NCBI RefSeq assembly: GCF_032191835.1
Contig: NC_083237.1
Location: forward strand, 24,056,001-24,120,000
Length of the DNA stretch: 64,000 bases
Reading direction: 5' to 3'
DNA from: Heteronotia binoei
Lineage: Eukaryota
Shown: positions 6,783-37,922 of the stretch, piece by piece
Layout of the letters: every line of letters begins with the position of its first letter
Position numbering within the stretch: the stretch's first letter is position 1
Translations under genes and position numbers: made by a program
The notes under the pieces: model-generated
What the model was told of the DNA's origin: nothing
Database searches by the model: none
Seen by the model: the letters and a program-made list of their open reading frames with translations, nothing else

Positions 6783-7131
6783 CTAGCTTGGTGGGCTCCA
6801 GATATGTGGTGGGCTTGGAATGGGTTCAAGGTTTTGGTATGTTGGCATGTTTTGGTATAACGGTTTGTTTTGATATGTTGGTGCATTTTGGTATAGTGGT
6901 TTGTTTTGGTATGTTGGCACGTTTTGGTATGCTGGTACATTTTGATATAGTTGGCTTCGAGTAGATGATGGGTTCGGGGCATTTGTGGAGTTTGGAGTCT
7001 TCTCTGCTGGAGGACTTGCGACACCTGTGTCTTCTGACCACTCTGAACTCCACGAGTCATCTGAACTTTCTGTGCCATCATCCTCTTGAGCTTTGGTCTC
7101 TCCTTTCCGTGCCCTTTTGCGACGGTAGTAC
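6783..7131 (-). CDS. Unassigned IZUMO gene exon 7 (cytoplasmic tail)
   Basis: ctctttgcctacag|g acceptor, phase 2; basic stop-transfer YYRRKRARK, acidic Ser-rich stretch, 7 YQN repeats, TAG at 6785-6783; AATAAA on the minus strand at 6597-6602. Confidence 0.87.
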
Positions 7132-10100
7132 CTGTAGGCAAAGAGAGAAATGAGCACTAAGGCTGCAATGGGAAGACACTGCTTTAGTGTCTGTGGCTGT
7201 GATCTATGCTGAAAGAGGTATTCTAATTCTTAGTATTTATGTATCCTTTTTAGCAAGCATTCATAAGAAGAGAAGCCATGTTGGATCAGGCCAATGGCCC
7301 ATCCAATCCAACACTCTGTGTCACACAGTGGCAAAAAAACCCAGGTGCCATCAGGAGGTCCATCAGTGGGGCCAGGACACTAGAAGTCCTCACACTGTTG
7401 CCTCTCCCAAGCACCACAAATACAGAGCAGGATTCCTCCCCCCTTTCTGGCCTCTCAGCAACTCTAATTAGAAGCCCTTTACACAGAGAGCAATCCCTAT
7501 TAGGACAGTCAAAATGCAAAATCTTGATTAAACACGCAAAGTCCATAGCAGTGCTCTTAATTCCTAATCAGAGTCTTTTTCGATCAGAGCATACTGACTT
7601 TCTTTGATTCTTGGTTGATGCATGCAATTTAAAATCAAGACAAGAAAGTAGTTTTATGGGTACACTTGTTACCTTGCTGTAATCCTTACAACAGCCTTAC
7701 AAAGCAGGCCAGATGCAGGCCCACATCTGAGAGGAAGTGGTTTGCAGAAGGGTGGGTGGCAGCTAAGATATAAAACAAATTCTTGAGTCACAGCCGGTGT
7801 GCTGCCCTCCTCTCCAGGAGTACCCTATAATTGTATGGTCTCCCAGATTTAAGATTGTGGGACTCGCATAGCCAGGGCTTTTTTGTAGCAGGAACTCTTT
7901 TGCATATTAGGCCACACCCCCTTGATGTAGCCAATCCTCCTGGAGCTTACAGTAGGCCCTGTACTAAGAGCCCTGTAAGCTCTTGGAGGTTTGGCTACAA
8001 GAGAGGGATGTGGCCTAATATGCAAAGGAGTTCCTGCCACAAAATAAGCCCTGTGCATAGCCATAGACTGCTGCCCCCCCACATACATATATCTGTAGAC
8101 TGTATAGCCTTACCACACTCCAACACCAGCAGCAAGCAGGATCACAAGGGTCACCAGCACACCCGCAAGAACGTTGGGCCCTGTAGGAAAGAAACAGCAC
8201 CTCTTTCAGAAAGTGGAAGAGATAATCTGGGAGGGAGACAAGTTAGCAAAGGTCTCTTAGATCTACAGCAAATCAGTGCTGGCTCTGCAACCAGTATAGG
8301 TTTGCCTGGGGCAGGGGAGAATCTGTCTGCATCTCGAGAACAAAACTGGAGTGCAGGAGCACCTTTAAGACCAACGAAGTTTTATTAAGTTTAACGCCCC
8401 CCTCCAAAAAAAAAGACCAACGAAGTTTTATTGAGAATGTAAGCTTTCATGTGCTAAAAGCACACTTCATCAGACAATGAAATGGGGTACAGTGTGCAGT
8501 GCTACATATAGCTTGTGGGCAGGGTTAAGCATGCAAAATAATACAAAATAAGAATCCAATGGCAAAATAGTGAAATTAACAAATTGAAAGAATAACAGTT
8601 TTTGGTCTGGATAGTATAAGTTGCCTGGGAAAACAGCAAAAAACAGTAAACATGTCGGAATTGGAGAATGATGGTGAGAATGGCAGTAAATGAGAAACCA
8701 GCACCCTAAAAAAAAGTAAGATCGCCAGCTTGTGACTGCAAATTGCACTGCTGTGCCTGTCCTAAACGGATGCAAAGGAAATGTAAATACTGTTGTGCCA
8801 CGTGGCTTAAATCAATAGTAAGTGCAGAATTGCTTTGTGGCATAAAGATGTCAGCAGAAGCTCCCAAGTTACATACAAGGTATGTAGGAAAGTAACTGCA
8901 GGTATCTGCAAGGAGCACGTGGGCCCTGGGGCTTCAAGTGCCATTCTCTTGGGCAGATAGTGATCGAAGGGCAAAGATAACTAGGCCAGGAGAAGAAGAT
9001 TGTTCCTTTGGGTCTGCCTGCCCCATAGCCCTGTGAACAGGGCTAGCTGAATTAAAGAACTGAGCCTAAGGTGATCAGGTGAACTCCAGGGCTGTGTGTG
9101 TCCTCTAAGCTTCTACTCTGCCTTACTGTAATTGGCTGCTAGTCTGTCTTGGCTGGAGGAGGAGAAGCAGCTGTGATTGGTGGATGAGGTGGAGATGGCA
9201 ACGGAGAGAGACCAGTTACCTGCACATAATAAGGAATCGTTGCAGGGTGCTTTGAGCAGGTGGCAGTCCCTACACTCTGCCACTTCATAAGGTCGAAACC
9301 GGATCTGCTCTGTGTAGGGAAAGAGAGAAGGGTAGTGAGATTTTAATGTGAGCACACACAGAGGAGAAAGTGTCAAGGGACACCCTGAGTTGTAACTGCT
9401 GAAACCGTATGTTGTTATGTGGGCATGCGATAACAGCTTGTGGGGAGGTATTTTTGCATACCCCACTGGAATGAACCTGTCTGTGCACCACCACCATGCC
9501 ATGCTGCCCTCGGGAAAATGATTATGCATTCAAAACAATCCTGTATTTGTTGAACTTTGCTGCTCAAAGGTCACTACAGCAGGATCTCCATTGCTCCAGG
9601 GCTACTTACTCTGTTAATTTAATCCTCCCAGAAATAGGGTGGTCCCACTTCGGAGGAGGGAGGAGAAATAGCTGGATCCTACCCTTTATGCTTAACGGTA
9701 TTCTCTCACACACAAGCAAATCGGAGGCTAACACACACAGATGCCAGATGGCTAGACGGGCACATTTAGTCTGGGCAGATGGACTCACCGCAGGAGGCGC
9801 TGCAGACTGTGAAATTGTAAAGAGAGAAACAAGGGATGAGACAGACCTGGGAAATCTGGTCCCCTTCTGGCCAAAGAACCCAAATCCTAACTCTTCCCCC
9901 AACCCCAACAGGCCATCTGTGGAATCCATCCCATACAAGTTCAAATTGGCCAGAGGTGCTGCCGCCACCTCCTCTTAACAATCCAGTCTTAAGCTCACAG
10001 CCTAGTTTTGTGTCTTCACTGGTCAGGCAACCCAGCTTCTGCGCTGGCAGTCCCCAAAACAGACTAGAATCTCTGCTTGACCCATAAGCAGACTTGGGAA

Positions 10101-13100
10101 GCGGAGGGTGATCTTGCAAATATACATGTGTCTTAAGTAGGGAAGCATTACCACAATATGATTTCTCTCTACCCGCTCCCCTCACCTCTTGAATGCAGCT
10201 GTTGCCATGACCCAAACATGAGGTGGATACATTTTAACAGGATTAAACAGACATGTCTAGCTTTTCCAGTCACTGGTTGCTTCTCCAGGAGCAGCTTGTC
10301 CTGTTTAAGAAGGGTGCTGCTCTGACTTCCGGGATTGGAAAATGGTGAGCTGAGTTGCTTTCCCTAACGGGGGCAGGCTGGCACTTCTGTTCAGGGTAGT
10401 AAAAGGCAAATTAATGCCTTCTTCCTACGTTTCTCAGCTAGAGAATTGTCCAAGATATGCACAGATACTTTGAGGAGACTTACCTTGGCTGAAAGGGAGT
10501 CCCGGGGGGGGGGGTGGGGATCCTTTGAGGGATCTCCGGAGAGAAGTTGCATATTCATCGTCTGCAGAAGTTTCGAGAGTCATTAATTTGACATAAGCGT
10601 GACAGGATCCAAACCTTCTTTTACAATTTTAAACATCTAATCTATAAAGGACTGGTGTTGATTTGGATAAACTACAGAAAAAAGGTACTGATTGCTATCT
10701 CTTCACTCCGGGACTAATTAAAGTTAAACAAAACAAAAGTAAAAGGTGGGAGTTGGAAATACTGAAAGCCTGAAAGGAGAAGATGATAAGGGGCTAAATT
10801 TGAACTTTGTAAACTTAAAAGACAGTGTTAAGAGAAGAAAGGAATTTATTGTTTAGTCTATCTGTGGTTGAGGAGGCAGCCCCATCGTCACAGATCTGCA
10901 GCATTCACAGTCAACACAGGAAATATGTCAGATATCGTGAGATTTCTCTACCAGTGAAACGAGATTTGAAGGCAAGAAAAGCAGGAAGTATTGGAGGAAG
11001 AAAAAGGAAGTCAACAAAGTAAACAGCCTACTCTAGGATTATAATACCAGAGAGAAACATCGGTGACCATTGTTGTTGGGAGGACTAAGTTTTAACATCG
11101 TTTTTAAAGTGAGTGGGACATTAAAAATTGGTGGAGTTAACAGATTTGGCAATTTAAAAATTACTACTGTTGGATAGTAGATAACAAGATTTGAACTGGT
11201 AAAAGGGAAAAAAGAAACATTTTTTAAAGTGAAGCAAAAGTTGCGACTGCCATTTTGGGAGAAATAAAAACTTTAAACATTAATATCTGAGCCTGGGAGG
11301 CTAAGAGGACAGCGAAATTGGGTGCATTGGAAAGGGTAACCTTCACTTTATCAAACCTGATGGTTCAAATTTAATTTGGTGAGATCAAAATTTTTGATCT
11401 TGTTTTACATGTCAGACCCGAAACAAACTCGTGCTAGGTCTGCTTCAAGAGAGAAAATGCAAGCCCAATTAGATGCAATGGAAGCTAGGATAATGAAGGG
11501 GGTGAAAGAAATGATAACTGCCTCTAAAAAAATAAGAAAGGATATTGAGGACTCAAAGAAAGAATTAAAAAAAGAAATAGAGAATCTCAGAAATGACACT
11601 GTGGTAATAACAAAGAAAGTACAAGAAGTGGAAGAGAGAGTGAAAACACATGACTCCACCTTGTTAAAATTACGAGAAAAAGTGACAATTCATGACTGCA
11701 AACTGATGGAAACTCAGATCCATCTGAGAGGTGTACCTGAAGATGAAGAATCAGACCTGAAAGAATACATAATAAAAATAATTGCAGAATTTTTGGAGGA
11801 AGATCCTGAAGGGAATAGAAATATGTATGTCTATATGTATAAATTCACTCTATGCAAAAAAGAACAATCTGCCAAGAGATGTGGTCATAAGATTTATGAC
11901 AAAAGAAATGGTGGGAAAGATCATGAATGAAAACTTTGAAAAATCATTGACAGTGGGAGGCAGTAGAATAAGAATTATGAAAGAACTGCCAAGACAAGCA
12001 CTAACTGACAGAAAGGCATATAAAAAATTGACAGAAAAACTACATGACAATGGAATGAGGTACAGATGGATAATACCTGAAGGTTTGAGCTTTGAACTTC
12101 AAAGGAAAAGGATTACAATCACAAATATACAGGAACTGCGTAGATTTTATGAAGAAAATAAAGAATTTGCACCATGATGGATTATAAATTGATATCTTGG
12201 AATGTAAATGGACTAAATTCACCACAAAAAAGAAAGGCAACATTTCACTGGATAAAAAACAAAATTGTAATATAATATGTTTACAAGAAGTGCATATTAG
12301 ACAAAAGGATTATAAATTTCTATGGAATAAACAATTGGGACTAGAATTTTTTACATTGGCTGAACAGAAGAAGAGAGGAGTAGTCTTTTATATTAAACAA
12401 GAATTAGACCCAAAATTGGTATTTAAAGATAAAGATGGAAGATATATAGCAGTAGAAATTACTTTTGAGTGCAAAAAAAAGTTGTTGTTGGGACTTTATG
12501 CTCCAAATGGTGCTAAAGACATTTTTTAAAAAAAAATTACACAACATTTTGATGAAGTGACCTATGAGCAAATTTTATTGATGGGGGACTTTAACGGAAC
12601 AATTCAAAATACTATAGATAGATCTGCAAAGAAAAAAATGATAAAGAATGGAAATTGCCAAAGTCTTTTTTTGAATTGGTTAAACAGGAGAGTTTGGAAG
12701 ATATATGGAGGAAGTTTAATCCTGAAGTACGGAACTATACCTTTTCAGCTAGACATAGCTCTTTCTCTAGAATTGACATGTTGTGGGGTACTAAAGATTT
12801 GGGACTTATAACAAAGAAAATAGAGATATTACCTAAAATAGGAGCTGATCATAACCCAATAATGTGGATTACAAAACTGTCGAAAAAGTCAAGAAGATGG
12901 AGATTAAATGAAGACTTACTACAAAATAAAGAAATAGTGACATCTCTAGAAAATGAAACCAAAGTGTACTTCCAAGTAAATGACAGAGAGGATATAGAAT
13001 TTCAGACGGTATGGGATGCCTACAAGGCAATAATGAGAGGATTACTAATAATATTGAATAATAAAGACGAGAGCAAAAGATAAACAGATGTTGGACATTC

Positions 13101-16100
13101 AAAATGAAATTAAGAAAAAAGGTGAATTAAGGAAAAGGCCAGGAAAAAAGAAAATTATTTGGGAGATTAGAATATTGCAAGCACAAATGAGACATCTGTT
13201 AAATAAAAAATTGGAATGGAATTTGAAAAAATTAAAACAGAAATCTTTCGAGGGAGCGAATAAACTTGGAAAATATTTGGCCTGGCAATTGAAGAAAAAG
13301 AGAGAAAGTAAAATTATTAATAAAATTGTGGCTGATGGAAGAGAGATGGTAGATCAAGAAGGAATAAAGAGAGAATCTTTTAAATATTATGCTAAACTAT
13401 TTAAAGGTGTTAAAGTAAAGAAGGAAAAGTTGGAAGCGTATTTGCAGACGATTAAAATAGCACCCTTAACTGATTATATGGGAAAAGTTTTGAATGATCC
13501 AATTGAAAAAAAATAGAAATTGAAGTAGCAATTAATGCAATAAAAATTGGAAAGGCACCTGGACCAGATGGATTTACGGAAAATTTTTTTAAAACGTTTA
13601 AAGAAGAATTAATACTGAGACTTCAAAAATTAATGAATGTGATAAGAATAAATGGGAAAATACCAAATACATGGAAGGAAGCGGTAATTTCGTTGATTCC
13701 AAAGGAAGATAGAGATGTCACTAATGTAAAGAATTATAGACCAATTTCATTATTAAACAATGATTATAAGATCTACACAATCTTAGCAGAACGGCTTAAA
13801 CAATATTTAATAAACTTTATAAAGGAAGACCAAGCGAGTTTTCTCCCTAAAAGGCAAATAAGAGACAATATTAGAACTGTTGTAAATATTGTAGAATACT
13901 ATGAAAGACATCCAGAGAAGAAAGTTGCATTATTTGGTGTAGTGGTTAAGTGTGTAGTTTGGTGTAGTGGTTAAGTGTGCGGACTCTTATCTGGGAGAAC
14001 CAGGTTTGATTCCCCACTCCTCCACTTGCACCTGCTGGAATGGCCTTGGGTCAGCCATAGCTCTGGCAGAGGTTGTCCTTGAAAGGGCAGCTGCTGTGAG
14101 AGCCCTCTCCAGCCCCACCCACCTCACAGGGTGTCTGTTGTGAGGGAAGAAGACATAGGAGATTGTAAGCCGCTCTGAGTCTCTGATTCAGGGAGAAGGG
14201 CAGGATATAAATCTGCAATTCTTCTTCTTCTTCTTTGCGGATGCAGAGAAAGCTTTTGATAATTTGAATTGGGACTATATGTTTGCAGTAATGGAGAAAA
14301 TAAAGTTGGGGGAAAACTTTATAAGAATTATAAAAGCAATTTATACTGAACAACGTGCAAGGTTATGTATAAATGCAGATCTTACAGAAGAAATGATAAT
14401 CAGCAAAGGTACAAGGCAAGGTTGTCCACTTTCACCATTATTATTTATGACTCTTGAAATTTTATTGGTGCAAATACAAGATGATGAAGAAATTGAAGGA
14501 ATGAGAATTAAAGAATTTTCCTATAAATATAGAGCATTTGCAGATGATATAATGTTTATAAATGAAAATCCTATGCAAGTAACACCTTTGTTGTTAGCCA
14601 AAATACAAGATTTTGGAGAATTGGTGGGACTTTATGTTAATAAAGAAAAGTCAAAAATTTTGTGTAAAAATATGCAAGTAAGTAAACAAAAGGAATTGCA
14701 GAGATTAACTGGATGTGAAGTTACCCCTAAAGTAAAATATTTGGGCGTGGAAATAACAATGAAGAATATTGATCTGTTTAAAAACAATTATGAAAAGCGA
14801 TGGCGTAAAGTGGATGAAGATATGATAAAATGGAACATGCTTAATTTGTTATTTCTTGGTAGAATAGCTGCAATTAAGATTAACATCTTGCCGAGAATAA
14901 TGTATTTGTTTCAAACTATTCCGATTGTGAAAGACAGTAAACAATTTAATAAATGGCAAAGAAAAATTTCAGAATTTCTATGGGCCGGGAAAAAACCAAG
15001 GGTTAAAATGAAAGTTTTAACAGATGCTAAAGAAAGAGGAGGATTTCAACTACCAGATTTAAGATTATATTATGAAGCAGTTTGTCTAGTGTGGATAAAA
15101 GATTGGGTGACGCTGTTGAATAAAAAACTTTTAACATTGGAAGGTCATGGAAATAAATTCGGCTGGCACGCTTATATGTACTATGGAAAGAAAAAGTCGG
15201 ATGTTATTTTTTTCTCACCATTATATAAGAAATAATCTAATAAATATTTGGATGAAGTACAAGAAATATGGCGATGAGAGAAAACCACTATGGATAGTGC
15301 CAGCAGAAGTAATAAGAATAACAGCTGAGACAGGAGAGGAAAAAGGGATGTCATATAATCAATTACTAAAAATACAAAGCGGTAAAATAGAATTGAAAAC
15401 TGCTGAAGAGTTGAATAATAAATATGATTGGTTTCAAATGCAACAAATAAAAAGTTTGGTGGAAAGCGATGTTAAAATTGAAGGAATAAGATGAGAACAA
15501 ACAGAAATGGAAAAAGTTCTGCTTGGAGATAATGAAAAATTAATTTCAAAAATCTATAAGTTACTTTTAAAATGGTCTACGGAAGATGAAGTAGTGAAAT
15601 CTCAAATGATTAAGTGGGCAATTAATGTAAATAAAGAAATACAGATGGACACATGAGAATATTTGTGGAAGAACTCTATGAAACTCTCAACATGTCAGAG
15701 TATTAAAGAAAATTGTTTTAAGATGATGTACAGATGGTATATGACTCCTAAAAAGTTTGCAAAGATGAACAATAAGATGCCAGATAGATGTTGGAAATGT
15801 AAAAAACATGAAGGTTATTTCTACCATATGTGGTGGACTTGTGAAAGAGCAAAAAAGTACTGGCAGATTATTCAACAAGAGACTTCTAAGATCTTGGGAT
15901 ACAAATTTAACACAGTTGCAAAGACTTTTCTGTTGAGATTACAAATGGAAAAATTTCCAAAAGAAGATAGAACTTTAATTTGGTACTTTCTCTCAGCTGC
16001 TAGGACATTGTATGCGCAGTTGTGGAAGCAAGAAAAAATACCAGAGAAATGGGATTGGATTGTAAAAGTTATGACATGGAGTGAAATGGACAAGTTAACA

Positions 16101-19100
16101 AAAACCTTAAGAGACTATGATTTAGAAGTATTTAAGATGGAGTGGGAAAAGTTCAGAAGATACATAGAAAAAGAGTGGAAAATAAAAGGACATTGGACAA
16201 TTTTTGATAATGATTGAGTACAAGAGGGAGGAGGATATTAATTTTGGTTCTTATTAATTAAGGGTACCTTTAATATTAAGATTTTAAGTATATAACACCA
16301 GCGGGGGTCAAGTAACAGGGGGAGGGTGGGTAGAAAGTAATATATGGGATAGATTAAAAAAAAAGTAATGATGTAAGAAATTGAAATTATTACCATATGT
16401 TACTAATAAAATTGTTTGAAACCTAAACCTAAAGACGGATGCTGCTCTGGGTTCTGGCCACTTGCATGGGTGCGTCACATCCAGTGCTCCCTCTAAGCTG
16501 AGTGAGTGTGAGCAAGCTCACAGTTTTTTAGTTTCCAGCTCACATGTTTTTGCCTTAGCTCTGGAAAAATGCCCCCAGAGCAAACTGATTTATGCAGTAG
16601 CTCACAACCTTAATGCCAGTAGCTCACAAAGTGGAAATTTTGCTCACAAGACTCTGCAGCTTAGAGAGAGTATTGGTCACATCTACCTTCGTGCTTGCAA
16701 TAGTGTTTAAAGTGGCAGCACAGTGTCATTAGAATGTCTTTGTGTTGTTTTACTGTCTGCAGGGCTGGGCTCAGGCAGGTCCTTCTGGGTAGGGGAGCCT
16801 AGAATATGGTGACACCGCTGAGAAGGCCCTGCTAAGCCCAGACGCCCGTGGAATCCTCTTGAATGCAGCTATTTCCAGGAGTCATTTTGTAGAAAAATAG
16901 GTGGTGGAATTCAGGGGTTGTTATGCAGCTGCACCTACTATTCAATGGACAAGGTGGGGAGGAGGGGGAACACTCAGAAAGGTTCAGGAACTGTGCTTCT
17001 GTGAGTTCCTGCAGAATTTGAGGCCTGGCTATTTCCATGACCCAAACATGAGGTGGGTCGATTACCCAAACATGAGGAGGGTGGGTAGAGAGAAATCATA
17101 TTGTGGTAATGCTTCCCTACTTAAGACATTTCAGAAATTGGCAATTTTCACTCATGACGTCAAATTTGTAACAAACTTGTAGAGGGCATGGAGAAAATAC
17201 GCTTGGATCCCTTCACAAACTGCTCCTCCTTGTTACCTACATATCTGCAAAGAAGTACACCCCAGATCTTTCTATGGGACCTAGATACTCCAACTACTTT
17301 GAAAGGTGGATGTGATGTTTTTTGGTGGAGGGGTTTCAGTCAGCCAGAAAAGAGGGCTTTGGACAGCTGGGCTGAAGAGGGTTTTCCACAGTGCAGTTCT
17401 TCAAAGTTCTGCCTCCTCCCACCACTATTCTTCAGAGCCGGGGCCCTGCCCTCCTTTGCCTGTGTTAACTCTTGGAGGGGAGTGAGTGGCACTTACTTTC
17501 TTTCAGAAAGGTGCTGGATGCCTCTATCAATCTCTTGCTGAAATTCTGTTTTGCCTGCCCTGCCTTTGTCAGGAGGCGCTCAGGATCTGTGGGTAAAAGG
17601 AGCTGAGGTTAATGGAAGTCAGGGCTGGATGGCTGGAGGCCAGAGAGCTGGGTGGGAAGGAACTTACACTGACCCTCTACAATCTGGGAGACTCAAGTTC
17701 CAGTCCTCCACTCTGCCATGAAGCTCACTGGGTGACAGGCCTAATTGTCACACTCCCAGCTTCATTTACCTCACAGGGTTGTTTTGAGGATGCAAAGGAG
17801 GGAGAAAAGAGGGTTGTTATTAATTATTTAAATTTATGCCAACTCCATCTTATGGCCAACGCCGGGCTCTAGGCAATGTACAACTGTGGCCTGGGAAATT
17901 CATGGAGATTTGTAGTCAGTGTCTGCGGGGGTGGGGTGGGGATCTAAAGAAGGATTTCTGCCTGGAATCTATGGTATACCATAGGTATACATCCCTTTCT
18001 CCAGGGGAAGTGATCTCTGCAGTCTGGAGAACAGTGGTAATTCCTGGAGACCTCCAGTGGCCACCTGGAGGTTGGCAGCCCTAGCAGAGAATCAGGTGTA
18101 CTGCCCTGAGCTCTTCAGATAAAGGACAGGGTTTAAAAAAAATGTATTAGGTGGATGAGAACTTCTAGCAAGTGGGGTCGGGGGTGAGCCCACACATGTC
18201 TACCTATCATAGATGGCAACATTAAATGACCCGCTTGTGTAAAGAGGCTACCACATCAGGCACATGGTGCTTTTTAAAAGAAATCATTCAATGAATGATT
18301 GACTGATGGCTGAATTAATCATTTGCCAATATGTGGATCCAGTTGAAGGAAGCATATCCAAGTTCACGTAGCACAGATTAATGAGCCTGTAGCAGTTATG
18401 AAGCCTTGACTCCTGAGTGGTGAATTCATTAAGGGTGTTATAATGTATAAGACCCAGTGCTTTTTTGGGGCAGGAGCACACAGGAGCAGAGCTCCACCTG
18501 AGCTGGCCAGGGCTGCAGCTGGCACGCTGGAGAAGGCACAGGGAGGCACCTTTAAATGCCTCCCCAGTAGCTTCAGCCTTCTCCAGCACACCCGCTACAG
18601 TGGGTGTACTGGGAAAGGCAAAGGGGAGCTCCTGCTGGGCTTTTTAAAAAAACAAAAACCCTGATAAGACCAGTCAGCAACTGGAAAAGGAAATGCTCAG
18701 CTCCTACCTTTTTTGTTTTCCTGTGTGATCTGTTGAAGCTGAAGAAAGAGATTCCCAGTCTCACGCTGCATATCTTCCCACTCTGTAAATAACAAGGGGG
18801 GACAGACAAAGATATGCCTGGTGATGTTTGGTCCTTATCTAGTTCTCAGGTCTAAGCACAACACCTGTTCTACCCCCCTGGCCTAACACATCAGTTTTTC
18901 TGACCTTTTCATTCTCTGTGTCATCAGGACTGTAAGCAAGAGAAGGTGAGAGGGAAACCCAGTGTCCAGGTAGGGCAGCTGAATGGAAGGGCTACATACC
19001 TCCCAATATTGTTTTTCAGACTTTCTGTTGTCCCAGACACTGCTTCATGCCAATTTTTCTCCTTACTTGCATATTTGACATGGCATCTTTCAGCCCTGAA

Positions 19101-25100: not shown

Positions 25101-28100
25101 CCAATCTCCACCTCCTCAGGAATAATTTTAGGCAAGTCAGATATATAACAGAGGAAGGCAACTATCCCCTTGTAATGTATCCCTAGGTGACATTCACTTT
25201 GGGTCCAGTTCCCTGAGCTGCCAGTCATAGAAGTGGCTCGCATCCTTTGCTTTAGCCATTACATTGGTATCTGCTTTAGGTACTGGGTGTGCATAGATAC
25301 TGCCATGTTGCTTGCTAGCTAGCAAATATGGTGCAATCCTGTTTTGTATGCATCTCCCTCCCCTCTCATTTCAGCTTGCTCAGAGGATTGCAGTAAGTAT
25401 CAGACATCTCCCAACCCAGATGTTGCCCCAGAATCCCCCCCCCCGTTGCCCCTTTTCTTTCAGCAGTGGCAGGTTCGACCTGGTGCTCTTCCTTCCATAG
25501 CAGTGACTGAGGGCCCCATTTTGGACTGCTGGACCTGCTTGCGTATTGCCACCCAGTGCTTTGATGGCGAGCTCTGTGGAGGTACTGCTGGGGACGAGAA
25601 GGGGGCTGGGTTTAAACTCCTTTCTTATTGTCTCTTTTGGGGGGCACCTGCACGCTTAGGGAAGTGCTGGACCTAATGAACATTTCATACTAGTTTATCT
25701 GAAGTGGTTTCTTTCCCAAGAATCCTGAGAATTATAGTTCAGCAAGAATGTTGAGAATTTGTTATTTTAAATCCCTCTGCAACCAAACTGCAATCCTTTA
25801 GAGACCTCTGGAGAGAGAGAGAAAATGCCCCCATTCCTCTAGTTTTGGGGCTGAGAACACATCCCACTCCAAGTTGTTGTTGTTAGGGGAGGTTGTTTTA
25901 GAACTTTCACCCAATTTGTGAAGGAGCAAGCTGACAAGCCCTCCACAGGTTGGTCCTGGTGGGACAGGGAAACCCCCGCTGTATTCCCAAATCTCTGCTG
26001 ATTGCTACTGCCCCCTTCTCCTCAGCCTCAGGGGAACCAAAAACACACTGGGAATCAAGCACTGCCACCAGCACGGGATCTCCTGCTAGATGCAGGAGAT
26101 CCACTGCTGAATGGATCTCCTGCTAGATGCTGTTGAACATCTAGCACTCAGAAACTGCGTTGCTTGTCCCATATGCCATAGCTCTACAAGCTAACACAGC
26201 GACAGCATATTGCAGGGGTGGCCAATGGTAGCTCTCCAGCCCCATGCTGGCTGGGGCTGATGGGAGTTGTAGGCAAAAAATATCTGGAGAGCTACCATTG
26301 GCCACCCCTGGTATATTGCAACTTCACCCTCTGAGCTATCATGCACCCAGGACCCTGAACTTCTCCACAGCCCCTTCTTGTTACCACAATTAAGACAGCA
26401 AGATCAAACAGGGAGATAAGGAAGCTAAATAAATGAGCAACAACAACAAAAAGCGTATTCATGGCCTGTTTGAGCATGTGGGCTGAGCAAGCATACAAAG
26501 AAAAAGTGAAAATGGAGATTTCTTTCACTGCACTCGCTACTTACCATGGACGATGCTTAATTAGGACAGAGCAGTATTATTTACAGTAGTTGATCAGCTG
26601 AGACCTCTCCATTGTTCCTCACCACATGGACAAAGATGGCATCCCTAGGTGAAAGCTTAGTCCTTCATGGCTTGTGCCAATACATGGGAAAGAGCAAGAT
26701 ATGATCAGAGAATGTATAGTCTCTCCTTGGGAGAGTCCTTCCCCTTCCCCAGGATTGTGTTCAGATCTTCCTACTGCAAGAGGAAGAGAGATTTCTTGCT
26801 TTTTGGCTGTCCTCTGTCCCTTTAGATGAAACCTTCTAGCAGGGTGTGAGATGATAAACCTAGGATTGTCCTACTCCAGCCAGAGCCTGTTAGCATATGT
26901 AAACACAAAGTACTCTGTGCCTGGGCTTCATGGCTCAACCCATGCCCTCCTCCTTCCTGCCAGCCATGAGTTTGCAGCTTGGTTCCAATTCTGAAACAAT
27001 GCAGCCACCCCAATGGCTAAGATGTTGGTGTGAATGTTGTGGTAGAAGGCTTTTCACAGCACAGTATAAGGAAAAGGTAGTGTTTGTCTTGTCCAGTGAG
27101 AGTGTTCCCTAGTGCCACTGGCATATATATCCCTTTCTGACTTTATAATAACCCCTCCCCACAAAATAAAACCTACTCCCCAAAAAGGGTTCCCAGGTCA
27201 GTGTTGGAAAATACCTGGAGACCTAGGTAAAAGCTTAGTCCTTTGTGGCTTGTAAGAACCTCGTGGCGCAGCGTGTTAAGGCTGCAGTACTGCAGTCCTA
27301 AGCTCTGCTCGTGACCTGAGTTTGATCCCTGGTGGAAGCTGGGTTTTCAGGTAGCCAGCTCAAGGTTGACTCAACCTTCCATCCTTCTGAGGTCGGTAAA
27401 ATGAGTACCCAGCTTGCTGGGGGAAAAGTGTAGATGACTGGGGAAGGCAATGGCAAACCACCCTGTAAAAAGTCAGCTGTGAAACGTTGTGAAAGCAATG
27501 TCACCCCAAAGTCGGAAATGACTTGTGCTTGCACAGGGGACCTTTCCTTTTGGCTTGGGCCAATGCATGGAGAAAAGCAAGACAGCAAGATGTGCCCAGA
27601 GAATTTATAATATCTCCTTGGGAGCATGAGCTACTCAGATCAAAGGTTTGCTCAATTTGTTAATTTTACTGCATACTGCTGTTTTGTTGCTTTCGTATGC
27701 TCACGCTACTCAGATCAAAGGTTTGCTCAATTTGTTAATTTTACTATTCTGTCATTGTACCATTTTACATTCTAAACAACTGCCTACCAGATAATTTCAC
27801 TTCATTGTCATTGGTTCTTAAATCTGTACCATGTTGCATTCTGGGCCACTGCCTACCAGCTATGTATGGCTTTGCTCAGCTATTTATGGCTTTGCTCACT
27901 GTGCTGGATTCTTCGTCTGATGAAGTGTGCTTAAGCCACCATTTTGGTGGCTGGAGCATAATGCATATGGGGATATCTATTCCACAAACAAATACACCCA
28001 CACTCACATAAATTATGAGGGTGATCTCTTCATCCCACCACCCAATCCATACATAAAGCTAACACGGCTTGTCTCTTGCCCTCTAGTGGAAGATGCGCAT

Positions 28101-29611
28101 ATTGCAGAGCATAAAGAAATCAATCTCTACGTGTTCCTTGTGTGTGAGTCCGTGCTGATTTCTTCAGCTGTGCTTGTGTAAGTATATGGCTCTGGCCCGT
28201 CCCCCTCACTCTCTCGTGGAAAGCTTTTACTCTTCCCTGTTGGTTCCTCTCCATATTTGCCTTGCTTCCCAAAGAATCCATGGGGCCCCAGTCCCACAAA
28301 CCTGGCTCACATGGTCATGCTGTGGTCATAACAAACCAAGAATTTATTTATTTATTTATTTAATTCGATTTATATCCCGCCCTACCCCACCGAGGTGGGC
28401 TCAGGGCGGCTTACAACATAAAAACCAACAAAATCAATTTAAATACATTAATAATACATTAATAATTATAATTATACAATAAAATACATAAAAATATATA
28501 AAAACACATAAAGCTCACTTCAGTATGTACTATGCTACCTTCTTTAAATCAATTCTTCAATATTCCAGTATTAAATAATCTGGTGTTCGAGACTGAGTGT
28601 TCAGGCATTCCGATAACAATTAGTTGTATGCTAACTGGAAGAGGGCTGTTTTGCAGGCCCTGCGGAACTGTTCAAGGCCGTAAGCTGTAAGAAGTTTCTT
28701 ACAGCCCACTATTGCTGCTCAGTTTGGTGTAGTGGTTAAGTGCGCTGAATTTTATCTGGGAGAACAGGGTTTGATTCCCCACTTCTCCACTTGCAGCTGC
28801 TGGAATGGCCTTGGGTCAGTCATAGCTCTCGTAAGAGTTGTCCTTGAAAGGGCAGCTGCTGTGAGAGCTCTCTCAGCTCCACCCACCTCACAGGGTGTCT
28901 GTTGTGGGGGAGGAAGGTAAAGGAGACTGTAAGCCTTTAAGACTCTGAGATTCAGAGTGAAGGGTGGGGTATAAATCCAATATCATCATCTTTGTCATAC
29001 ACACATCTGAGAAGGAGTTAACAGGCAAGACAGTGGTGAGAGATCTAGAAACTGAAGCAAGTTTCTAGCCCTTGTGATGCCAGAGGGAGCTCAGGATCAC
29101 CTCTGTGTTCTTAACTTTCTGCCTGTTTTCTTCTGTCACAACTTTCACTTCCTTTACATTAAATTCCAGACGATTCAAATGGCAGAGATACAAACATAAA
29201 GAGCACAAAACCAGTTGGTGCAATAGCATGTCCCCTCCCCCCCCACACACTCATACAACGTTTCCAAGCTCAGAAATCATCCCTATCACTTGAAACCCCT
29301 AAAGTGGAGAAGGGGGGAGAGGTACAAAACAAGAACATATCTTTCACTCCCCTTAGATCCAGGGAAGAGTTAAACCCCCTTTACCCAGTTCTGCAACCCT
29401 GATCCATGTGGCTCACCCAGCACTGTGCATTTTAGAGCAAAAGAAAGGTTTGAGAAACATCCTTTTAGCTCTAAAGCAACAGGAACTGCTCCTGCCCCTG
29501 AAGACCTGATAGCTCTTCCTCTGCTTGTACTCACTGGACTTCTCCATTCCCAGGTATTTGGTGTGCTTCAAACACAAAAAGAAGATGTTGCAGAAAGCTC
29601 TGGCCCGCTAG
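22173..29611 (+). CDS. IZUMO3: Izumo sperm-egg fusion protein 3, 7 coding exons, about 214 aa
   Basis: join 22173-22404, 22492-22566, 23550-23639, 25375-25392, 25501-25581, 28087-28177, 29554-29611; GT-AG and in frame. Motifs CLQCD, WK|[21 protein letters not shown]...CFDGELCG closely match recalled human IZUMO3 ([23 protein letters not shown]). The start could be ATG 22173, 22179 or 22182. AATAAA at 29673-29678. Confidence 0.92.
22956..23135. mobile_element. Palindromic MITE, same family
   Basis: Same TIRs; degenerate 8-bp TSD. Confidence 0.75.
27256..27550 (+). mobile_element. Sauria SINE
   Basis: ggttgactcaaccttccatcc..gtcggtaaaatgagtacccagc..ggcaatggcaaaccacc..gcacaggggacctttcc, as in the recalled Sauria SINE consensus. 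Confidence 0.8.
28345..28680 (-). mobile_element. L2-like LINE 3' end
   Basis: (TTTA)n followed by tatatcccgccc..gctcagggcggcttac; a similar remnant at about 41480-41570. Confidence 0.55.
28720..28990 (+). mobile_element. Squam3-like SINE
   Basis: Near-identical to the 13933 copy. Confidence 0.8.
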
Positions 29612-30542: not shown

Positions 30543-30710
30543 GCAGGGCTGGCCCTATATGTCTGACACCCTAGGCAAGGCTAACTTCTGGCGCGCGCCC
30601 CCTGCAATGGTGACATCACTGAGTCACATGGGGGGTGCCCAATTCGGCACCTCCAGAAGGCCGGCGCCCTAGGCAATTGTCTAGTTTGCCTAGTGCCAGG
30701 GCCTGCCCTG
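30543..30710. mobile_element. MITE with cagggc(c/t)ggccc termini
   Basis: gcgccctaggc..ctagtttgcctag core; relatives at about 285-352 and 63430-63590. Confidence 0.6.
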
Positions 30711-31069: not shown

Positions 31070-34000
31070 CTAAACATACAGATAGAGCCGGTTTCTCCAG
31101 TATGATATAATCCTGGGGAGAAGACAAAATTAGTGCTCTCCCCAGCTCCCCCCCAACTCTTTTACCAGGGCTGAGTCAGCTGCAGGTTCCTACATCAGAG
31201 GAACAAGCTTGCAATGCAGAGTTCCCTTTCTAGGCGAGCCCCTGCAGCCGACTCCAGGGTGGAGGTGGCTGTTTCTACTCACACGCCTATGATCACCAAG
31301 AACAGCACTCCGCCCATGCACAGGACAATGGCCACTCCGTTTTGGGCAATGTTGGGATCCCACAGGACTGGTCCGTAGCGAAGAGTGAGGCGGTCCTGGG
31401 AATCCACTGAACATACAAATCTTGGATTTAATGCATGGAAATTCATGTCCCTGCACTAAGATCTGGACATATCGGTTTAAGCATCACATCTTTCTCCCAG
31501 GCATGCACACCCTTCCAGCTGTTCTCAAAGTTTTTGAAGTGGGATCGACTTCTATATTGACTTTACTTTTTGGGGGACCCACCTGCAAAATAACACCAAT
31601 CTATTTTCACTGTCCTCAGAGCAAGACTTTCACATCAGTTAATAATGAACAAGTTTGCATTTTCAGGTTTTTTTTATTAGTGTTGTTTACTTCCCCACCC
31701 CCCATTTTCCTCCCCAGTGAGGACCCAAAGCTGCTGTTTTTTCCTCACGACAACTCTGTGAGGTAGGTTAGGCTCAGCTTGCATGACTGGCACAAGATCA
31801 CCCCAGTGAACTTTAAAAAAAAACAAAATGAATTTTCTTGAAGGATTTAAAAAGTCTAAAAAAGACAAAAGAAAGGCAGAGAAGAAAGAGAAGAGCCAGG
31901 AGGTCCAATTTTATGAGCCCCCCAAAATGTGCCCCTAGCCTTCATTATTTCCAAATGGAGGGAAGGCATTTAAAAGGCATGTGGTCCCTTTAAATGTGAT
32001 TGCCACCAGAACTCCCTTTACAGTTCAGTGGTGCTTGTCCCACCCTTACTCTTGGCTCCACCCCCAGAAGACCCCAGATATTTCTTGAGCTGGACCTGGC
32101 AACCCTTCTAGAGGGAAAGAATGTAAGGCAAATGTGACATGAACACGACTGCAGGACTATCTGACAAAAATGCCCCTTCCACACTCCTAGTGTTGAGTAT
32201 GTTTACTCCTTAAACATAAATTTGAAATCTGGATTTTGGTATCTCTAGGTAAGTGCTGCCCTCTGCTGGACAGGGCCACATGGACATGCACACAGATGGA
32301 CAGCCATTCCATGATTTCATCCTAAATATGCACCCTGAGCTGCTCTATCATCCATTCTGTCCAGCTTCTGATACTACAACAGGCCCCAAACCTGGGATCT
32401 TTGGTGCCACCACTCAGCTCTAGTCAAATAAAGGACCTGCAAGAGAAACCAGTTATATCACCAAGGGAGTTTCTTAACAGCAATCAGTCTCCACAAGTCA
32501 GGTGACACTTCCTGACCCCAGTGAGAACTCCCCAATCAGCCATCTTGGTCAATGTATTGCCTTCGCTTGCCCTCCTCCTGAAGGAACCCAGTCTGATATG
32601 TTGCTTTCCAGCCAAAAGCCATTTCTCTGTCACATGTAAGCCCTAGCCACCTCTTGATATCCCCAGATATACCTACCAAAGCACTGGTGTATCGTGTAAC
32701 AAATGGCATTGGCATCTTTACATCTGACACAATCCAAAACATTATATTGGAGTGAGTCTGCAACAATGGAGGAAGAGAGCAAACGTGAGGAAACCCCCAC
32801 CATAGTGTGATACTCAACTGGGCTAAGCAAGCAAGTTTTTTGGCCTGCCCAAGGCAAACCTAATGCTCTAACTCAGAGATGGCCACAGTTTTCTGGGAAT
32901 TGCACAGCCTCACAACTCAAGCATCACTTAACAAATGTTTCTAGTCTCACTCCACAGAACTCTCCTCATACATGGCCACCATGATTATAGGTTGACACGC
33001 CCTCCCAGGGGGGTCCAAAGTGTGGCTGAGGGAGCTGGACTAGAGACAATAATGTTGAGTTTTGCTCAGGTCACTGCTGGACTTCAACACAATAGGCTTT
33101 TCAATTTGCTAAGAGAGCCTGTTTGGTGTAGTGGTTAAATGTGCGGACTCTTATTCAGGAGAACTGGGTTTGATTCCCCACTCCTCCACTTGCGGCTGCT
33201 GGAATGGCCTTGAGTCAGCCATAACTCTTGCAGAGCTGTCCTTGAAAAGCCAGCTTCTGTGAGAGCTCTCAACCCCACCTACCTCATAGGGTGTCTGTTG
33301 TCGGGGAGGAAGGAAAAGGAAATTATAGGCCACTCGGAGACTCTGAGATTCAGAGAGAAGGGCAGGGTATAAATGCAGTATCATCTTCCTTCTTCTAACG
33401 TTTGCTCCCTTTTGTTCCTGGGTGCTACTCTAGTGCTACCTGTGCTCTAATGCCCCCCCCCCCAAACTGTAGTCCAGTAGGACAGCTTCTGCTTCACATG
33501 CAGAAGGTCACAAGTTCAGTTCCTGGTATCTCTAGTTAAAAGCAGGGCTTTTTTGGTAGAAAAAGCCCAGCTGGAACTCATTTACATATTAGGCCATGCT
33601 CTCTGATGTCACCATTGTGTCATATGAGGCTTTTTGTGGGAAAAGGCCAGCAAGGAATCATTTGCATATTAGGCCACACCCCCTCACAGCAAGCCAGCCG
33701 GAACTGCGTTCCTGGTTAAAGGAACTGGTAGAAAGTAAAGACCTCTTCCTGAAAGCCTGGAGAGCTGCTGCCATTCGAAGTGGACAAGTCTGACCTTGAT
33801 GGACTGATGGTCTTGTTCAGTTTAAGGTGGCTTCATGTGTTAACTGATCAGGTCCCTACATTTGAATACCCAGCAATACAACTCCTTGAACTTACCACAA
33901 GTTGCCTTGTCACAAGCTGTGAGGGAAAAAGAGAATCCAAAAATTAGTGAGACTAGACCCATTTTCAATTAACTACAGTTTTTTCCCCTCAACTTCAAAG

Positions 34001-37000
34001 TGTTCCCAGGAGACTATTTGCCCTCTGCTTCTATTCCTGGGCAGGAATATTACAGTTACTACAACCAGTAGTAGCAGATGAGAAAAGTACCACTAGATGC
34101 TGCAAGTAGATGGTCATATAGAACCCTTTTTTCCCTCCAGGCAGCTGGCAACCCTATTTTCATGTCAGCAGGAGCATAATGGGAAATGCACACTCTGCAT
34201 CTTTCCCCATAGAACTCCACAACAGAAAGGGCCAAAAATGAAACTTGGGAACTAACACATTGGGGCCACAGATCATTATAAAGTTGCTATGCTCTAGTGA
34301 TATAGCAATTCCTCTATGTGTGAATGCGCGCTCATATGTGTGTGTTTAAAGCCCTTCCAAAGCAGGAAAAAAATGACAGCCATGGAGTGCTGAGACAAGA
34401 AAGGATGGGGAAATGTACATGGGGTGGTTCCACTGTTAACCACAAATGCCGCTGCATTCGCTGCAACAATGACAGCTATACAGAGAATCCTATTTACACG
34501 GGACCAACTTTTCTACTGGTGAAAAAGGAAGGAGGGCTCCTCTTTTGTTCACTGCAAATGGCTATTTTAGGGATCACGGGGCATGCACATAAATATTTTT
34601 GTCATCAATCCTGTAATGGAAACAAGAAGCAGAAGAGACCTTGAAATCAGGGTGGTCAGCCTAAAGATTTTCAACAGTTGGCATTGGTGGGTGGGTGGGG
34701 AATGCAGTGGGGCAGAAGTGGGTGCCAGGGTGCCTGCCAGCACCTTTCATATCACCCACCAAGTGTGTTTAGAAACTGGGTGGGACCAGCTGAGCCTCTT
34801 GCTCAACAGAGCTTCTGATTGGCCACTGGAGATTCAACTGGCTATGCAAATGCAAATAATGTTGTTTCCGCGGCAAATTACCCTTCTTCTCCCCAGCACT
34901 TGGGCTTCCTCTCTGTGATTGGCTCTACTTCCTGCAGCAGCCATTTTGTGGTTGGTTCCACCTCCTTTGACAGCTCTGTTGCGGTTGTGCCCACCATGCT
35001 GTACCTGAATTTGAAAGGTGCCCACAGGGTGAAAAAGATTTGGATTATCTGGAATGGTGCACGAGGCTGGAGAAAAACCCCGTTACCTTTTGTCTGATGT
35101 TCCTTTAAAGCCTCCTTGAGCTTCATGGTTGTTTTCTTCCGGAATTCAACCAGTTCATCCAGCAGAGCCTGGTCTGAGGACACAGAACAAAAGATGCTGG
35201 GGGCGGCTGGGGATCCCACACAGAGCAAAGCATGCTACGGTTCAGAAAGTGTCTGTGTTGGAGGTGAAGCCATCTGCCTCCTGGTGGTGCCTGGGAAGAA
35301 ACAGCAGCTGAGGTGTGGTTGAGAAAATGGTTGCTGGTTGCACTGTAGGCCCAAGTTCTACAATTTGTAAATAAATCAGGTTTTTTTGTAAGCAGCTGGG
35401 ATCAGTTTTTTTGGGAACCTGGAGGACCTTTCTGTGTCCCTATTATAACACTGTACAAGACCCTTTATTAAGCGGTCAGCTTTCACCATCAAGTGCCAGC
35501 ACAGGCCACAGACAAAATGCAGCCTGGGAACCCCCTCACTTTCAGAAGAATCCACATAAGATCCTCGATTAATCTTATGTCCGGGCTGAAGTTTCCTAGG
35601 GGCTCTGTGAGCTTCAACCCAGACAGTAGAGCGCTAGGACTTAAGCAGTTGCAGTCTGGTTGGATGGGCTGCACTGGACTACCTATAGGGGGCTTGAAGG
35701 CCAATTTGAATGCACCTATAGGTTGGGAGCCGGGTGGAGCCTGACAATATTTAACCAGGCCGTGGTCTGGGGTTTACATGCTTGTTTATAGTTGCTGATC
35801 ACTATGATTGGAGCTCTTTCCATTGAACTCAGTATTTAACAATTAAGAATGCAGCTATGACCCCCCCGCCGCCCCAAGCAGTGACTTAGAGTTGCCAACT
35901 CCAGGTTAGGAAATTCCTGGAGATTTGGGGTTGGGTGGGAGGTACCTCATTGGGGTATAATACTATTGAGTTTATACTCCAACTGGGCCATTTTCTCCAG
36001 GCGAGCTAATCTCTGCCATCTGGAGATCAGTTGTAATGCCAGGTGATTCCCAGGCCCCAGCTGGAAGTTGGCAACCTTAGGCAGTGGTCCAGAGGACTAG
36101 TACACTTGATAGATGTTCAAGCGAGGAACACTGCTCAGGAGTGCCTCTGGAAACCGCAAAATGGCTCTCTAGGGGAAAAGGACTGATCTTGTACAGGACA
36201 AGAGTCCAGCTGCCCTTTTCATTAAGAGACCAAGAGGGGTTCCCCCCCTCCCAGACAACAACAGCAACAAAGAACGTGATTGGCTAAAGAAAGACCCAGG
36301 GAATGGCTTTTCCAGCAAAAGGGCAAACTAAGGAATGAGACATTAGGCCTCTCACCTGTACGAGTGTTTTTAGCCAACTCTTCCGTTCTTGACCTCACTT
36401 CTTTCATCAGGCCATCAACTGTACTCTTAACTGGGAGAAAGGAGAGAAAGATGGCAGCAGTCACCTCAATTTGCAGAGATCCTGCAGTAACGGTAGCCAG
36501 AGGGAACGGCTCTGGCAGAGCAACTCCAAAGGTATCCGACGCCCAGGGCTTTTTATGTAGAAACAGCCCAGCAGGAACTCATTTGAATATTAGGCCCCAC
36601 CCCCTGACATCACCATTGTTCCACACAGGACTTTTTGGTAGGGAAAACCCAGCGGAAACTCATTTGCATATTAGGCCACACCCCCTGGCATCACCATTGT
36701 CCCATGGGGCTTTTTTGTAGAAAAATGCCAGAAGGAACTCATTTTGCATATTAGGCCACACCCCTGATGCCCAGCTGGCCAGGACTGCGTTCCTGCTCAA
36801 ATAAAAGCCCTGTTGACATCTGCTGAGAAGGGGAGAATGACCCTATGAGCCTTTCCAAAGGGCAGGAAAGCACACTGGGTGTGATTCAGTCAGGTTTATT
36901 TTTCACTAAGCCTCATGCAGTCCTCCTCCTTACTGCAGCCCTTGTCTTACATGGAGGTTGTTGATGCAGGTACTATTTTTAACCAACACAAAAGCTGGTA

Positions 37001-37922
37001 GGGCCCAGCCCATTATTTTAATGCAATTCTACAGCTAACCAAGTGGTATAAGCACAATAGTTAAGGTCCTGTGCCAACTGACCAGGTGGGAGGGTGGGGA
37101 GAGCCTTGCTTGCAGAGACATTGTTGGGGTTTGGAAATGGCTTGCTCTACATGGTTCTCTTTGGAAGCAGATGGTACTGGGAGGAGGAGAATGCACAGAT
37201 CTATACTTGCCTTGAGCTTCATTGGAGACAGGTGGGTTAAAACGTAATAAATAAAAAGTGATGAAGAGAAGGTTCATGAAATTAGGGCACAACCATAGCG
37301 ACAGGGTAGCACTGTTAGCATTATCTATTTTTTTAAAAAAATCTTGGAAAAAATGCATATCAGCACCACTATACAGAACTGGGGAGGATGGAATGTTTAT
37401 CCTTTCTGGAAGGGAAAAATGGTTATGTAATATTTTAAAGAGGCAAAGCTTGTTGTCAAATAATGTCATGGACACTAGCCAATAATTGCCTCCCACACTC
37501 ATAAAACTACCCTTCCACACAACAACCCACAAACTGTAACAGATGCCCTCACTGGAGAGAGAAAATTATTTTTCTTGGAGGAGAAACCTTTTAGTTGATG
37601 GGAAGATGCCTGGGTAATGATTGCATTTAATGCCCAGTTAAGTAACTGTGTTTGATTGGTAGAGCCAGGCTGTACCTGCAAATCCAGCAAACTGGCTGGT
37701 AGCATAATGTGAGAAAAAATCTCCCTCAAGACCCTGCAGCAGTGCTTCAGCGCGTGCCTTGAGGCGAGAGTCATGGATCTGACGCTGAACGAGCCCAGTC
37801 CTGAGCTTAGCCAAGTTATCCTTGAACTTTTCATCACACTGTAGACAGCCCCAAAGGCCTGTGGGCAGGAAGGCCACAAGCTGTAGGACCAACAGCTGCA
37901 GAGGAGAGCCCAAGACAAGCAT
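31070..37922 (-). CDS. IZUMO2: Izumo sperm-egg fusion protein 2, 7 coding exons, about 225 aa
   Basis: complement(join 37676-37922, 36356-36430, 35087-35173, 33896-33916, 32677-32757, 31283-31406, 31070-31112); GT-AG and in frame; gccATG start. WGCLQCD..LKARAEALLQGLEGDFF, DQALLDELV, ACDKATC, VLDCVRC, FVDSQDRLTLRY, TM, YWRNRLYLYV* align to recalled human IZUMO2 (WGCLQCD, LQARAGAVLMGMEGPFF, DEPLLEELV, FVDRQPRVALQY). Minus-strand AATAAA at 30878-30883. Confidence 0.9.
33115..33396 (+). mobile_element. Squam3-like SINE
   Basis: Same head, body and CTT-type tail. Confidence 0.8.
33543..33714. mobile_element. MITE nested in a tRNA SINE
   Basis: TSD gttaaaag/gttaaagg; the SINE resumes after it. 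Confidence 0.7.
36544..36812. mobile_element. MITE with internally triplicated subunit
   Basis: cagggc TIRs; three aggaactcatttgcatattaggcc-like units. Confidence 0.7.

Follow-up and report, generated by a model that had tools for sequence, protein, structure and literature searches.

A conserved cluster of TEX51, IZUMO3 and IZUMO2 genes sharing one exon plan in the gecko Heteronotia binoei

The stretch of the Heteronotia binoei genome analysed here (64,000 nucleotides of GCA_032191835.1, CM063339.1, hereafter the window) carries at 6783-37922 a 31-kb cluster of three genes, in the order TEX51, IZUMO3, IZUMO2 and with the orientation minus, plus, minus. We consider, with a probability of roughly 85%, that they are intact paralogues encoding type I sperm-membrane proteins of the IZUMO/IST kind. 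The original prediction had described three IZUMO genes with one exon plan, and its exon sizes, phases and orientation were all reproduced by an exact-size exon scan. The family label suits IZUMO3 and IZUMO2, both of which exceed the gathering cut-off of the Pfam IZUMO family (PF15005, 25 bits), while the third gene stays below that threshold and is assigned here, from its homologues, to TEX51 and not to an orphan IZUMO. On balance we also favour a bolder history, in which TEX51 would be in effect a fifth IZUMO gene: an inverted tandem duplicate of IZUMO3 within an ancient IZUMO2-IZUMO3 block, still sharing a 0.25-kb bidirectional promoter with it in squamates, the block having stayed whole in sauropsids and at least as IZUMO2-IZUMO3 in monotremes and having been scattered to three chromosomes toward eutherians.

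Exons were sought as splice-flanked open stretches of exactly the predicted sizes, and the choice among candidates was made with homologues. Homology searches were run exon by exon, and the exon sizes of orthologues were taken from exact mapping of proteins onto their genomes. All 21 exons have the predicted sizes, namely 205/75/90/18/90/67/349 for TEX51 (gene A, minus strand, 297 codons), 232/75/90/18/81/91/58 for IZUMO3 (gene B, plus strand, 214 codons) and 247/75/87/21/81/124/43 for IZUMO2 (gene C, minus strand, 225 codons). The intron phases are 1,1,1,1,1,2 in each gene, the internal borders are AG...GT throughout, each preceded by a pyrimidine tract, and none of the 18 split codons is a stop. 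As the same sizes and phases were found again in orthologues of other species, the agreement among the three genes is not due to chance. Two CXXC motifs also recur in the exon translations of all three genes, the first opening helix 1 and the second lying within a hairpin (CLHC and CRDC in TEX51, CLQC and CWTC in IZUMO3, CLQC and CVRC in IZUMO2). Each product is predicted to comprise a signal peptide, a four-helix bundle that opens with the first CXXC, a Cys-x3/4-Cys element encoded by the micro-exon, a beta-hairpin with the second CXXC, a transmembrane helix and a tail.

The kinship of TEX51 with the IZUMO genes is best supported by gene structure. TEX51 follows the plan x/75/90/18/90/67/y and IZUMO3 the plan x/75/90/18/81/91/y, with three consecutive sizes and all six phases equal, and both micro-exons open with Cys-Ser. 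In other species, TEX51 reads 211/75/90/18/90/67/241 in Podarcis, IZUMO3 reads 232/75/90/18/81/91/139 with the same phases in the guinea pig (Cavia) and 75/90/18/81/91 in Chelonia, and IZUMO2 reads 244/75/87/21/81/127/73 in the echidna and 232/75/87/21/81/93/47 in Sorex. The micro-exon occurs exactly once in each interval searched in the orthologous loci. In TEX51 it is 18 nt long and encodes CSASC in both Gekko and Chelonia and CSLSC in Podarcis; in IZUMO3 it is equally long and encodes CSEDC in Podarcis, Gekko, Chelonia, alligator and echidna; in IZUMO2 it measures 21 nt and encodes CxxxxC in alligator and echidna. Taken together, the common exon sizes, the Cys-Ser micro-exon and the head-to-head placement of the two genes argue for an origin of TEX51 and IZUMO3 by inverted local duplication.

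Concerning gene A, the exon 1 peptides of all three genes were combined into a profile, whose search against 1.84 billion representatives returned 37 proteins, among them a Gekko kuhli protein of 277 aa (P0018), which matches 6/7 of the exons of gene A at 56-91% identity. In all, 17-19 homologues were obtained (39-81% identity), most of which NCBI names TEX51; those of P0018 are called testis-expressed protein 51 in Paroedura, Hemicordylus, Pogona, Podarcis, Sceloporus, Zootoca, Notechis, Crotalus, Pantherophis, Anolis, Python and Pseudonaja. By its closest relatives and its conserved position among squamates and a turtle, gene A falls in the TEX51 orthogroup. Exon 1 (21712-21916, like all exons of this gene on the minus strand) encodes the signal peptide, the CLHC motif and helices 1-2, is 81% identical to residues 1-68 of P0018, and has an ATG start and a GT donor. 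Exon 2 (18708-18782; 75 nt, phase 1/1, AG/GT borders) and exon 3 (17497-17586; 90 nt) were found by tblastn with residues 67-93 and 94-123, each at 70% identity. Exon 4 (9789-9806) is the 18-nt micro-exon encoding CSASC; it has strong splice sites, and the same 18-nt exon is present in TEX51 of Gekko, Podarcis and Chelonia. Exon 5 (9220-9309) encodes the beta-hairpin with the second CXXC (CRDC) and two further cysteines (76% identity to residues 126-154), exon 6 (8114-8180) the transmembrane helix (91% identity to residues 154-176), and exon 7 (6783-7131; tblastn with residues 186-277) the cytoplasmic tail with an acidic/serine stretch, seven PxYQNx repeats and the stop codon.

The seven PxYQNx units of the TEX51 tail are encoded by an 18-bp tandem repeat of 6.8 copies at 6831-6954. 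The repeats read YQN in geckos, YEN or YAN in cordylid, lacertid and phrynosomatid lizards, and PSPPxFDI/M in snakes and Anolis, and this variation among squamates marks the tail as a fast-changing repeat array. The Y-x-N of these repeats fits the Grb2-SH2 consensus. In the loop between helices 2 and 3, TEX51 of H. binoei reads CDTC, in contrast to the lone Cys of other geckos. An Ig-bearing IZUMO1 identity was considered for gene A and rejected, the open reading frames (ORFs) of >=60 aa between exons 5 and 7 looking repeat-like and not like an Ig domain. Intron 3 harbors a degraded AT-rich non-long-terminal-repeat retrotransposon (long interspersed nuclear element, LINE) at 11376-16217 on the plus strand, antisense to TEX51, with reverse-transcriptase fragments (RVT_1) at 13633-13974 and 14264-15235; it takes up most of this 7.7-kb intron.

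The fold was examined with the TEX51 orthologue of Paroedura picta (P0038), whose AlphaFold model (pLDDT 75.7) has four helices, a hairpin and a transmembrane helix. Foldseek against the PDB returned IZUMO1 for all of the top 14 matches, followed by TMEM95. In VIA-align, IZUMO1 matched across the full IZUMO domain with Z scores of 9.7-7.8; TMEM95 scored 6.7, SPACA6 6.4 and unrelated helical chains <=5.3. The best structural match of the model is IZUMO1 (5JK9, 5F4T, 5B5K, 9MYL; Z 9.7 over 126 residues, rmsd 4.1), although IZUMO1 has an Ig-like domain and binds JUNO, and no Ig exon exists in any of the three gecko genes. By the modelled fold of this orthologue, TEX51 belongs to the IST superfamily, and the CXXC pair is present in gene A itself. 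The same placement, beside IZUMO1, SPACA6 and TMEM95, was reached by screening the human proteome for structural matches (Dupuis et al., 2025, Commun Biol, PMC12615630). The TEX51 described there also has a predicted signal peptide, four-helix bundle, beta-hinge, two CXXC motifs and transmembrane helix and no Ig domain, but its human isoforms have 166-203 aa, whereas the squamate tail is long and repeat-rich (297 codons here). As a lead only, the clusters nearest to Podarcis TEX51 in a language-model feature space are IZUMO3 (0.92) and TEX51 (0.90).

IZUMO3 of the window corresponds to the annotated H. binoei protein P0082, which contains every exon of gene B, exact and in order, and scores 105.6 bits as a whole on Pfam IZUMO. 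On the plus strand, exon 1 (22173-22404) alone reaches 30.1 bits on that profile, and exon 5 (25501-25581), encoding the hairpin with CWTC, reaches 27.3 bits at profile positions 119-143. Exons 1, 2 (22492-22566), 3 (23550-23639), 4 (25375-25392), 6 (28087-28177) and 7 (29554-29611) are exact substrings of P0082; exon 4 is the 18-nt micro-exon encoding CSEDC (Cavia has an 18-nt exon in the corresponding position), exon 6 encodes the transmembrane helix, and exon 7 includes the stop codon. The stretch 28405-28462 was also considered as the last exon and ruled out, as homologues point to 29554-29611. In a tree of 31 proteins from the three families, built without an outgroup and not including gene C of the window, P0082 nests among gecko IZUMO3 in a clade that also holds IZUMO3 of turtles and of five eutherians (support 95/98). 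Gene B thus groups with mammalian IZUMO3 and has the same gene structure, its plan 232/75/90/18/81/91 being that of the guinea pig; it differs in the last exon (58 nt against 139 nt in the guinea pig) and in being clustered and not alone. The hairpin exon is 85-100% identical across amniotes. Several squamate IZUMO3 models carry unrelated residues (GTNPEGKA and similar) in place of ACSEDC.

For gene C, the best relatives exon by exon are named IZUMO2 in Rhineura, Podarcis, Alligator, echidna, wallaby, rodents and two caecilians. Both these relatives and the gene structure place it in the IZUMO2 orthogroup (tree support for the IZUMO2 group 74/69). The Rhineura protein (P0003) scores 92.4 bits on Pfam IZUMO. 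All exons lie on the minus strand. Exon 1 (37676-37922) scores 28.0 bits on Pfam IZUMO and is 69.5% identical to P0003, exon 3 (35087-35173; 87 nt) is 83% identical to its residues 105-134, and exon 6 (31283-31406), encoding the transmembrane helix, is 73% identical to residues 166-209. Exon 5 (32677-32757), with the hairpin and CVRC, was found by tblastn with P0003 and gives 14.5 bits on Pfam IZUMO (E-value = 0.057). Exon 4 (33896-33916) is a 21-nt micro-exon encoding CDKATC, set by its splice sites, and a 21-nt exon is likewise placed in Sorex IZUMO2. Exon 2 (36356-36430) is the weakest of the seven, with exact size, phase and splice sites and no separate tblastn match. Exon 7 (31070-31112) is supported by size, phase and stop codon, and an annotated 135-aa IZUMO model also ends at 31070. 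Since that annotated H. binoei model has only 135 residues and lacks exon 1, the model of the original prediction is the more complete one. Among the relatives, IZUMO2 of Rhinatrema is unusually long (484 aa).

Synteny was compared across tetrapods. Gekko kuhli and Podarcis raffonei have IZUMO2, IZUMO3, TEX51 and an ENTH-domain (epsin) gene in the order and orientation of the window. Chelonia mydas has epsin, a 231-aa gene matching TEX51 exon by exon and then IZUMO3, with no IZUMO2 within 10 kb. In Alligator sinensis, a 2118-aa gene is followed by IZUMO2, IZUMO3 and, 2.2 kb further on, unannotated divergent exons 1 and 2 of TEX51. In the echidna, a myosin gene is followed by IZUMO2 and then by a convergent gene that is closer to IZUMO3 than to IZUMO2. 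In the caecilians Rhinatrema and Microcaecilia, IZUMO2 lies between an MPV17/PMP22 gene and another IZUMO-domain gene that is convergent with it (222 and 227 aa, respectively). If that caecilian neighbour is IZUMO3, the IZUMO2-IZUMO3 pair is at least as old as tetrapods. These loci bear out the claim of an ancestral cluster, its order being kept in the independent Gekko and Podarcis assemblies and partly in turtle, alligator, echidna and caecilians; neither unlinked IZUMO2 and IZUMO3 in outgroups nor a misassembly, either of which would speak against it, emerged from the comparison.

Human IZUMO2 lies at 19q13.33 and IZUMO3 at 9p21. Sorex IZUMO2 converges on a zinc-finger gene and has no family member within 10 kb, and in Cavia, IZUMO3 stands alone with no neighbour within 10 kb; no TEX51-like sequence was found at either locus. 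The idea that mammalian IZUMO3 relocated therefore agrees with the data, and as the pair is linked in the echidna and apart in the eutherians examined, the relocation would postdate the monotreme split. The simplest history would be a local duplication predating the amniote ancestor, with TEX51 and IZUMO3 as an inverted head-to-head pair, and a break-up of the cluster in the lineage leading to eutherians.

The start codons of TEX51 and IZUMO3 are separated by 256 bp (21917-22172, as set by the exon coordinates), and the gap between the two gene ranges is of similar length in Gekko (about 250 bp, L002 9747-10000) and in Podarcis (about 240 bp, L001 9762-10000). Blocks of this interval are conserved with both species, and those invariant in all three include GCTTCTTACATCA and TCCTTGGCA. 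In Chelonia, the first matches to TEX51 and IZUMO3 are roughly 1 kb apart, and in the alligator 2.2 kb. The 256-bp interval is probably a shared bidirectional promoter, and this would be the likely reason why the two genes stayed together.

A number of findings weigh against the descent of TEX51 from an IZUMO gene in this block, or against its being a functional gene in H. binoei, and they are best taken with the explanations that they would favour. The most probable of these, although a small probability, is that TEX51 of H. binoei has fallen silent or is decaying into a pseudogene. The annotated locus (window 12173-39611) has no gene call upstream of IZUMO3, and no TEX51 from H. binoei was among the search returns; TEX51 appears to be unannotated in this species. 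Additionally, the degraded LINE lies within intron 3, and four changes (R70W, E74Q, A77T and E105A in P0018 numbering) depart from residues that are invariant in 12 other squamates. However, the ORF is intact over 297 codons, all 12 splice sites are canonical, the split codons are sense codons, and the gene retains its micro-exon, every cysteine and the transmembrane helix. The ratio of nonsynonymous to synonymous substitution rates (dN/dS) against Gekko kuhli, summed over exons, is 0.43 overall and 0.35 for exons 1-5 (the ectodomain), similar to the 0.31 of IZUMO3. Missed annotation is also common here: the TEX51 models of Gekko kuhli and Hemicordylus omit the 18-nt micro-exon, yet Gekko DNA has it (L002 15209-15226). 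Judged from its sequence, TEX51 in H. binoei is under purifying selection and has not decayed.

Marginally less probable is that the ancestral cluster held an additional IZUMO paralogue, the third gene here, lost in mammals or diverged past recognition, much as the original prediction had proposed. PF15005 matches none of the TEX51 exons searched (1, 2, 3, 5 and 7), single small exons being mostly invisible to Pfam. At the level of whole proteins, IZUMO is the top Pfam match of Podarcis TEX51 (P0042), at 16.2 bits (E-value = 0.016) and thus under the cut-off of 25, and Paroedura TEX51 gives no Pfam match to IZUMO. As this threshold is not reached, gene A is not filed as a member of the IZUMO family. 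Word searches gave squamate relatives only, and a profile search with all squamate TEX51 sequences likewise returned squamates only, probably since low-complexity words of the tail filled the candidate list. Against a lost paralogue stand the names, NCBI calling all named relatives testis-expressed protein 51, the PSI-BLAST distribution of TEX51, which spans mammals, lizards, snakes and turtles (PMC12615630), and an Atlas cluster of TEX51 near the Podarcis protein (90 members, about 175 residues). From the names, the published distribution and the Atlas lead, squamate TEX51 would be the orthologue of mammalian TEX51; that this orthology rests on NCBI names and PMC12615630 is a further point on the debit side. 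With gene A as TEX51, which is present on human chromosome 2 and mouse chromosome 18 (PMC12615630), the claim that a third member was lost in mammals falls.

Less probable still is a mere resemblance, that is, convergent four-helix sperm proteins lying side by side without common descent. Support for TEX51-IZUMO homology from sequence comparison is weak. Aligned with hhalign, 12 TEX51 and 21 IZUMO3 sequences reach a probability of 36% (E-value = 3.7e-4) at ~17% identity, and TEX51 against IZUMO2 reaches 5.6%, compared with 96.9% for IZUMO3 against IZUMO2. A sequence search of the PDB with single exons returned nothing relevant, and TEX51 exon 1 gave no match. As for the fold, helical bundles reach middling Z scores by chance, and values of 6-10 can occur between unrelated ones. 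Convergence would nevertheless have to account for the six intron phases and the sizes 75/90/18 that TEX51 shares with IZUMO3, including the Cys-Ser-x-x-Cys micro-exon, and for a head-to-head adjacency kept in squamates, a turtle and the alligator. The hhalign alignment with IZUMO3 is moreover collinear from the signal peptide to the transmembrane helix, and it brings CLxC, the cysteines of the micro-exon, the second CXXC and the final two cysteines into register. Two more points bear on the proposed duplication: the tree of the three families, lacking an outgroup, gives no sister pair, so the order of duplications is inferred; and TEX51 was not seen beside IZUMO3 in the echidna or the caecilians, where only 0.4-4 kb past IZUMO3 were inspected (438 bp in the echidna). 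Finally, an assembly artefact of the H. binoei genome is refuted by the agreement of its gene order with Gekko kuhli, Podarcis raffonei and, in part, Chelonia mydas and Alligator sinensis, and by the lack of any run of N inside 6783-37922, the sole gap of the window being at 55480-55713.

The cluster is genuine and conserved; its IZUMO2-IZUMO3 part, two of the three genes, has already been published, and the genomic link of TEX51 to IZUMO3 is of modest interest. Izumo2 and Izumo3 were described as adjacent on reptilian contigs, and both as restricted to mammals and reptiles (Grayson, 2015, R Soc Open Sci, PMC4807442). The adjacency is the same here, but no third gene was given there, whereas the present block includes TEX51, and the echidna adds the pair and two caecilians IZUMO2 with a second IZUMO-domain gene, so that the pair would extend to amphibians, past the range of that study. 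No published physical or exon-level link between TEX51 and IZUMO3 was found in the TEX51 literature, judged mostly by title and abstract. Specifically, Dupuis et al. (PMC12615630) make no mention of synteny, duplication or paralogues for TEX51, and the passages on TEX51 in PMC12917576 concern its position and knockout only.

The sequences of proteins required for vertebrate sperm-egg fusion and for forming the sperm head (IZUMO1, SPACA6, TMEM95 and, more recently, TEX51) change quickly, so grouping has relied chiefly on predicted or solved folds. The TEX51-IZUMO3-IZUMO2 cluster offers independent genomic evidence that at least three members descend from one gene by local duplication. If TEX51 is indeed a fifth IZUMO gene, the genome itself would add evidence that part of the IST superfamily shares a common descent, a superfamily to which TEX51 has so far been assigned by predicted fold. 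The cluster also dates its own break-up to after the monotreme split. Apart from this, it exposes annotation failures in the family, as TEX51 is uncalled here, the IZUMO2 model is truncated and the micro-exon is missing from several models. The 256-bp interval is a candidate spermatid promoter. The picture of how IST proteins work is left unchanged by the cluster. In the mouse, the Izumo3 knockout causes subfertility with acrosome defects (cited in PMC12615630), and the passages on a second Tex51 knockout report normal fertility with >80% of sperm heads malformed (PMC12917576); as far as these accounts go, losses of Izumo3 and Tex51 hit acrosome or sperm-head formation and not fusion. By analogy with these mouse knockouts, the gecko genes may be expressed in spermatids and act in acrosome or sperm-head formation.

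On the flanks of the cluster, the last coding exon of an epsin (EPN1-like) gene lies at 1015-1440 on the plus strand, tail to tail with TEX51; its ORF ends in NPF motifs, and an ENTH-domain gene occupies the equal place in Gekko, Podarcis and Chelonia. Podarcis has a single-exon gene of 322 aa without a Pfam match between TEX51 and epsin (L001 19248-20246), and none is called in Gekko; the window has a 219-aa ORF at 2348-3007 on the minus strand, also without a Pfam match. At the other end, an ORF at 43256-43963 on the minus strand contains an exon of an MPV17/PMP22-like gene (weak Pfam Mpv17_PMP22 match, E-value = 0.093), upstream of IZUMO2 on the same strand and in the equal position to that of the two caecilians. 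A short interspersed repeat occurs on both strands at 7849-8088, 21542-21650, 22826-23161, 36500-36720 and 38442-38520, and a second repeat family at 27298-27627, 39176-39475 and 47262-47868.

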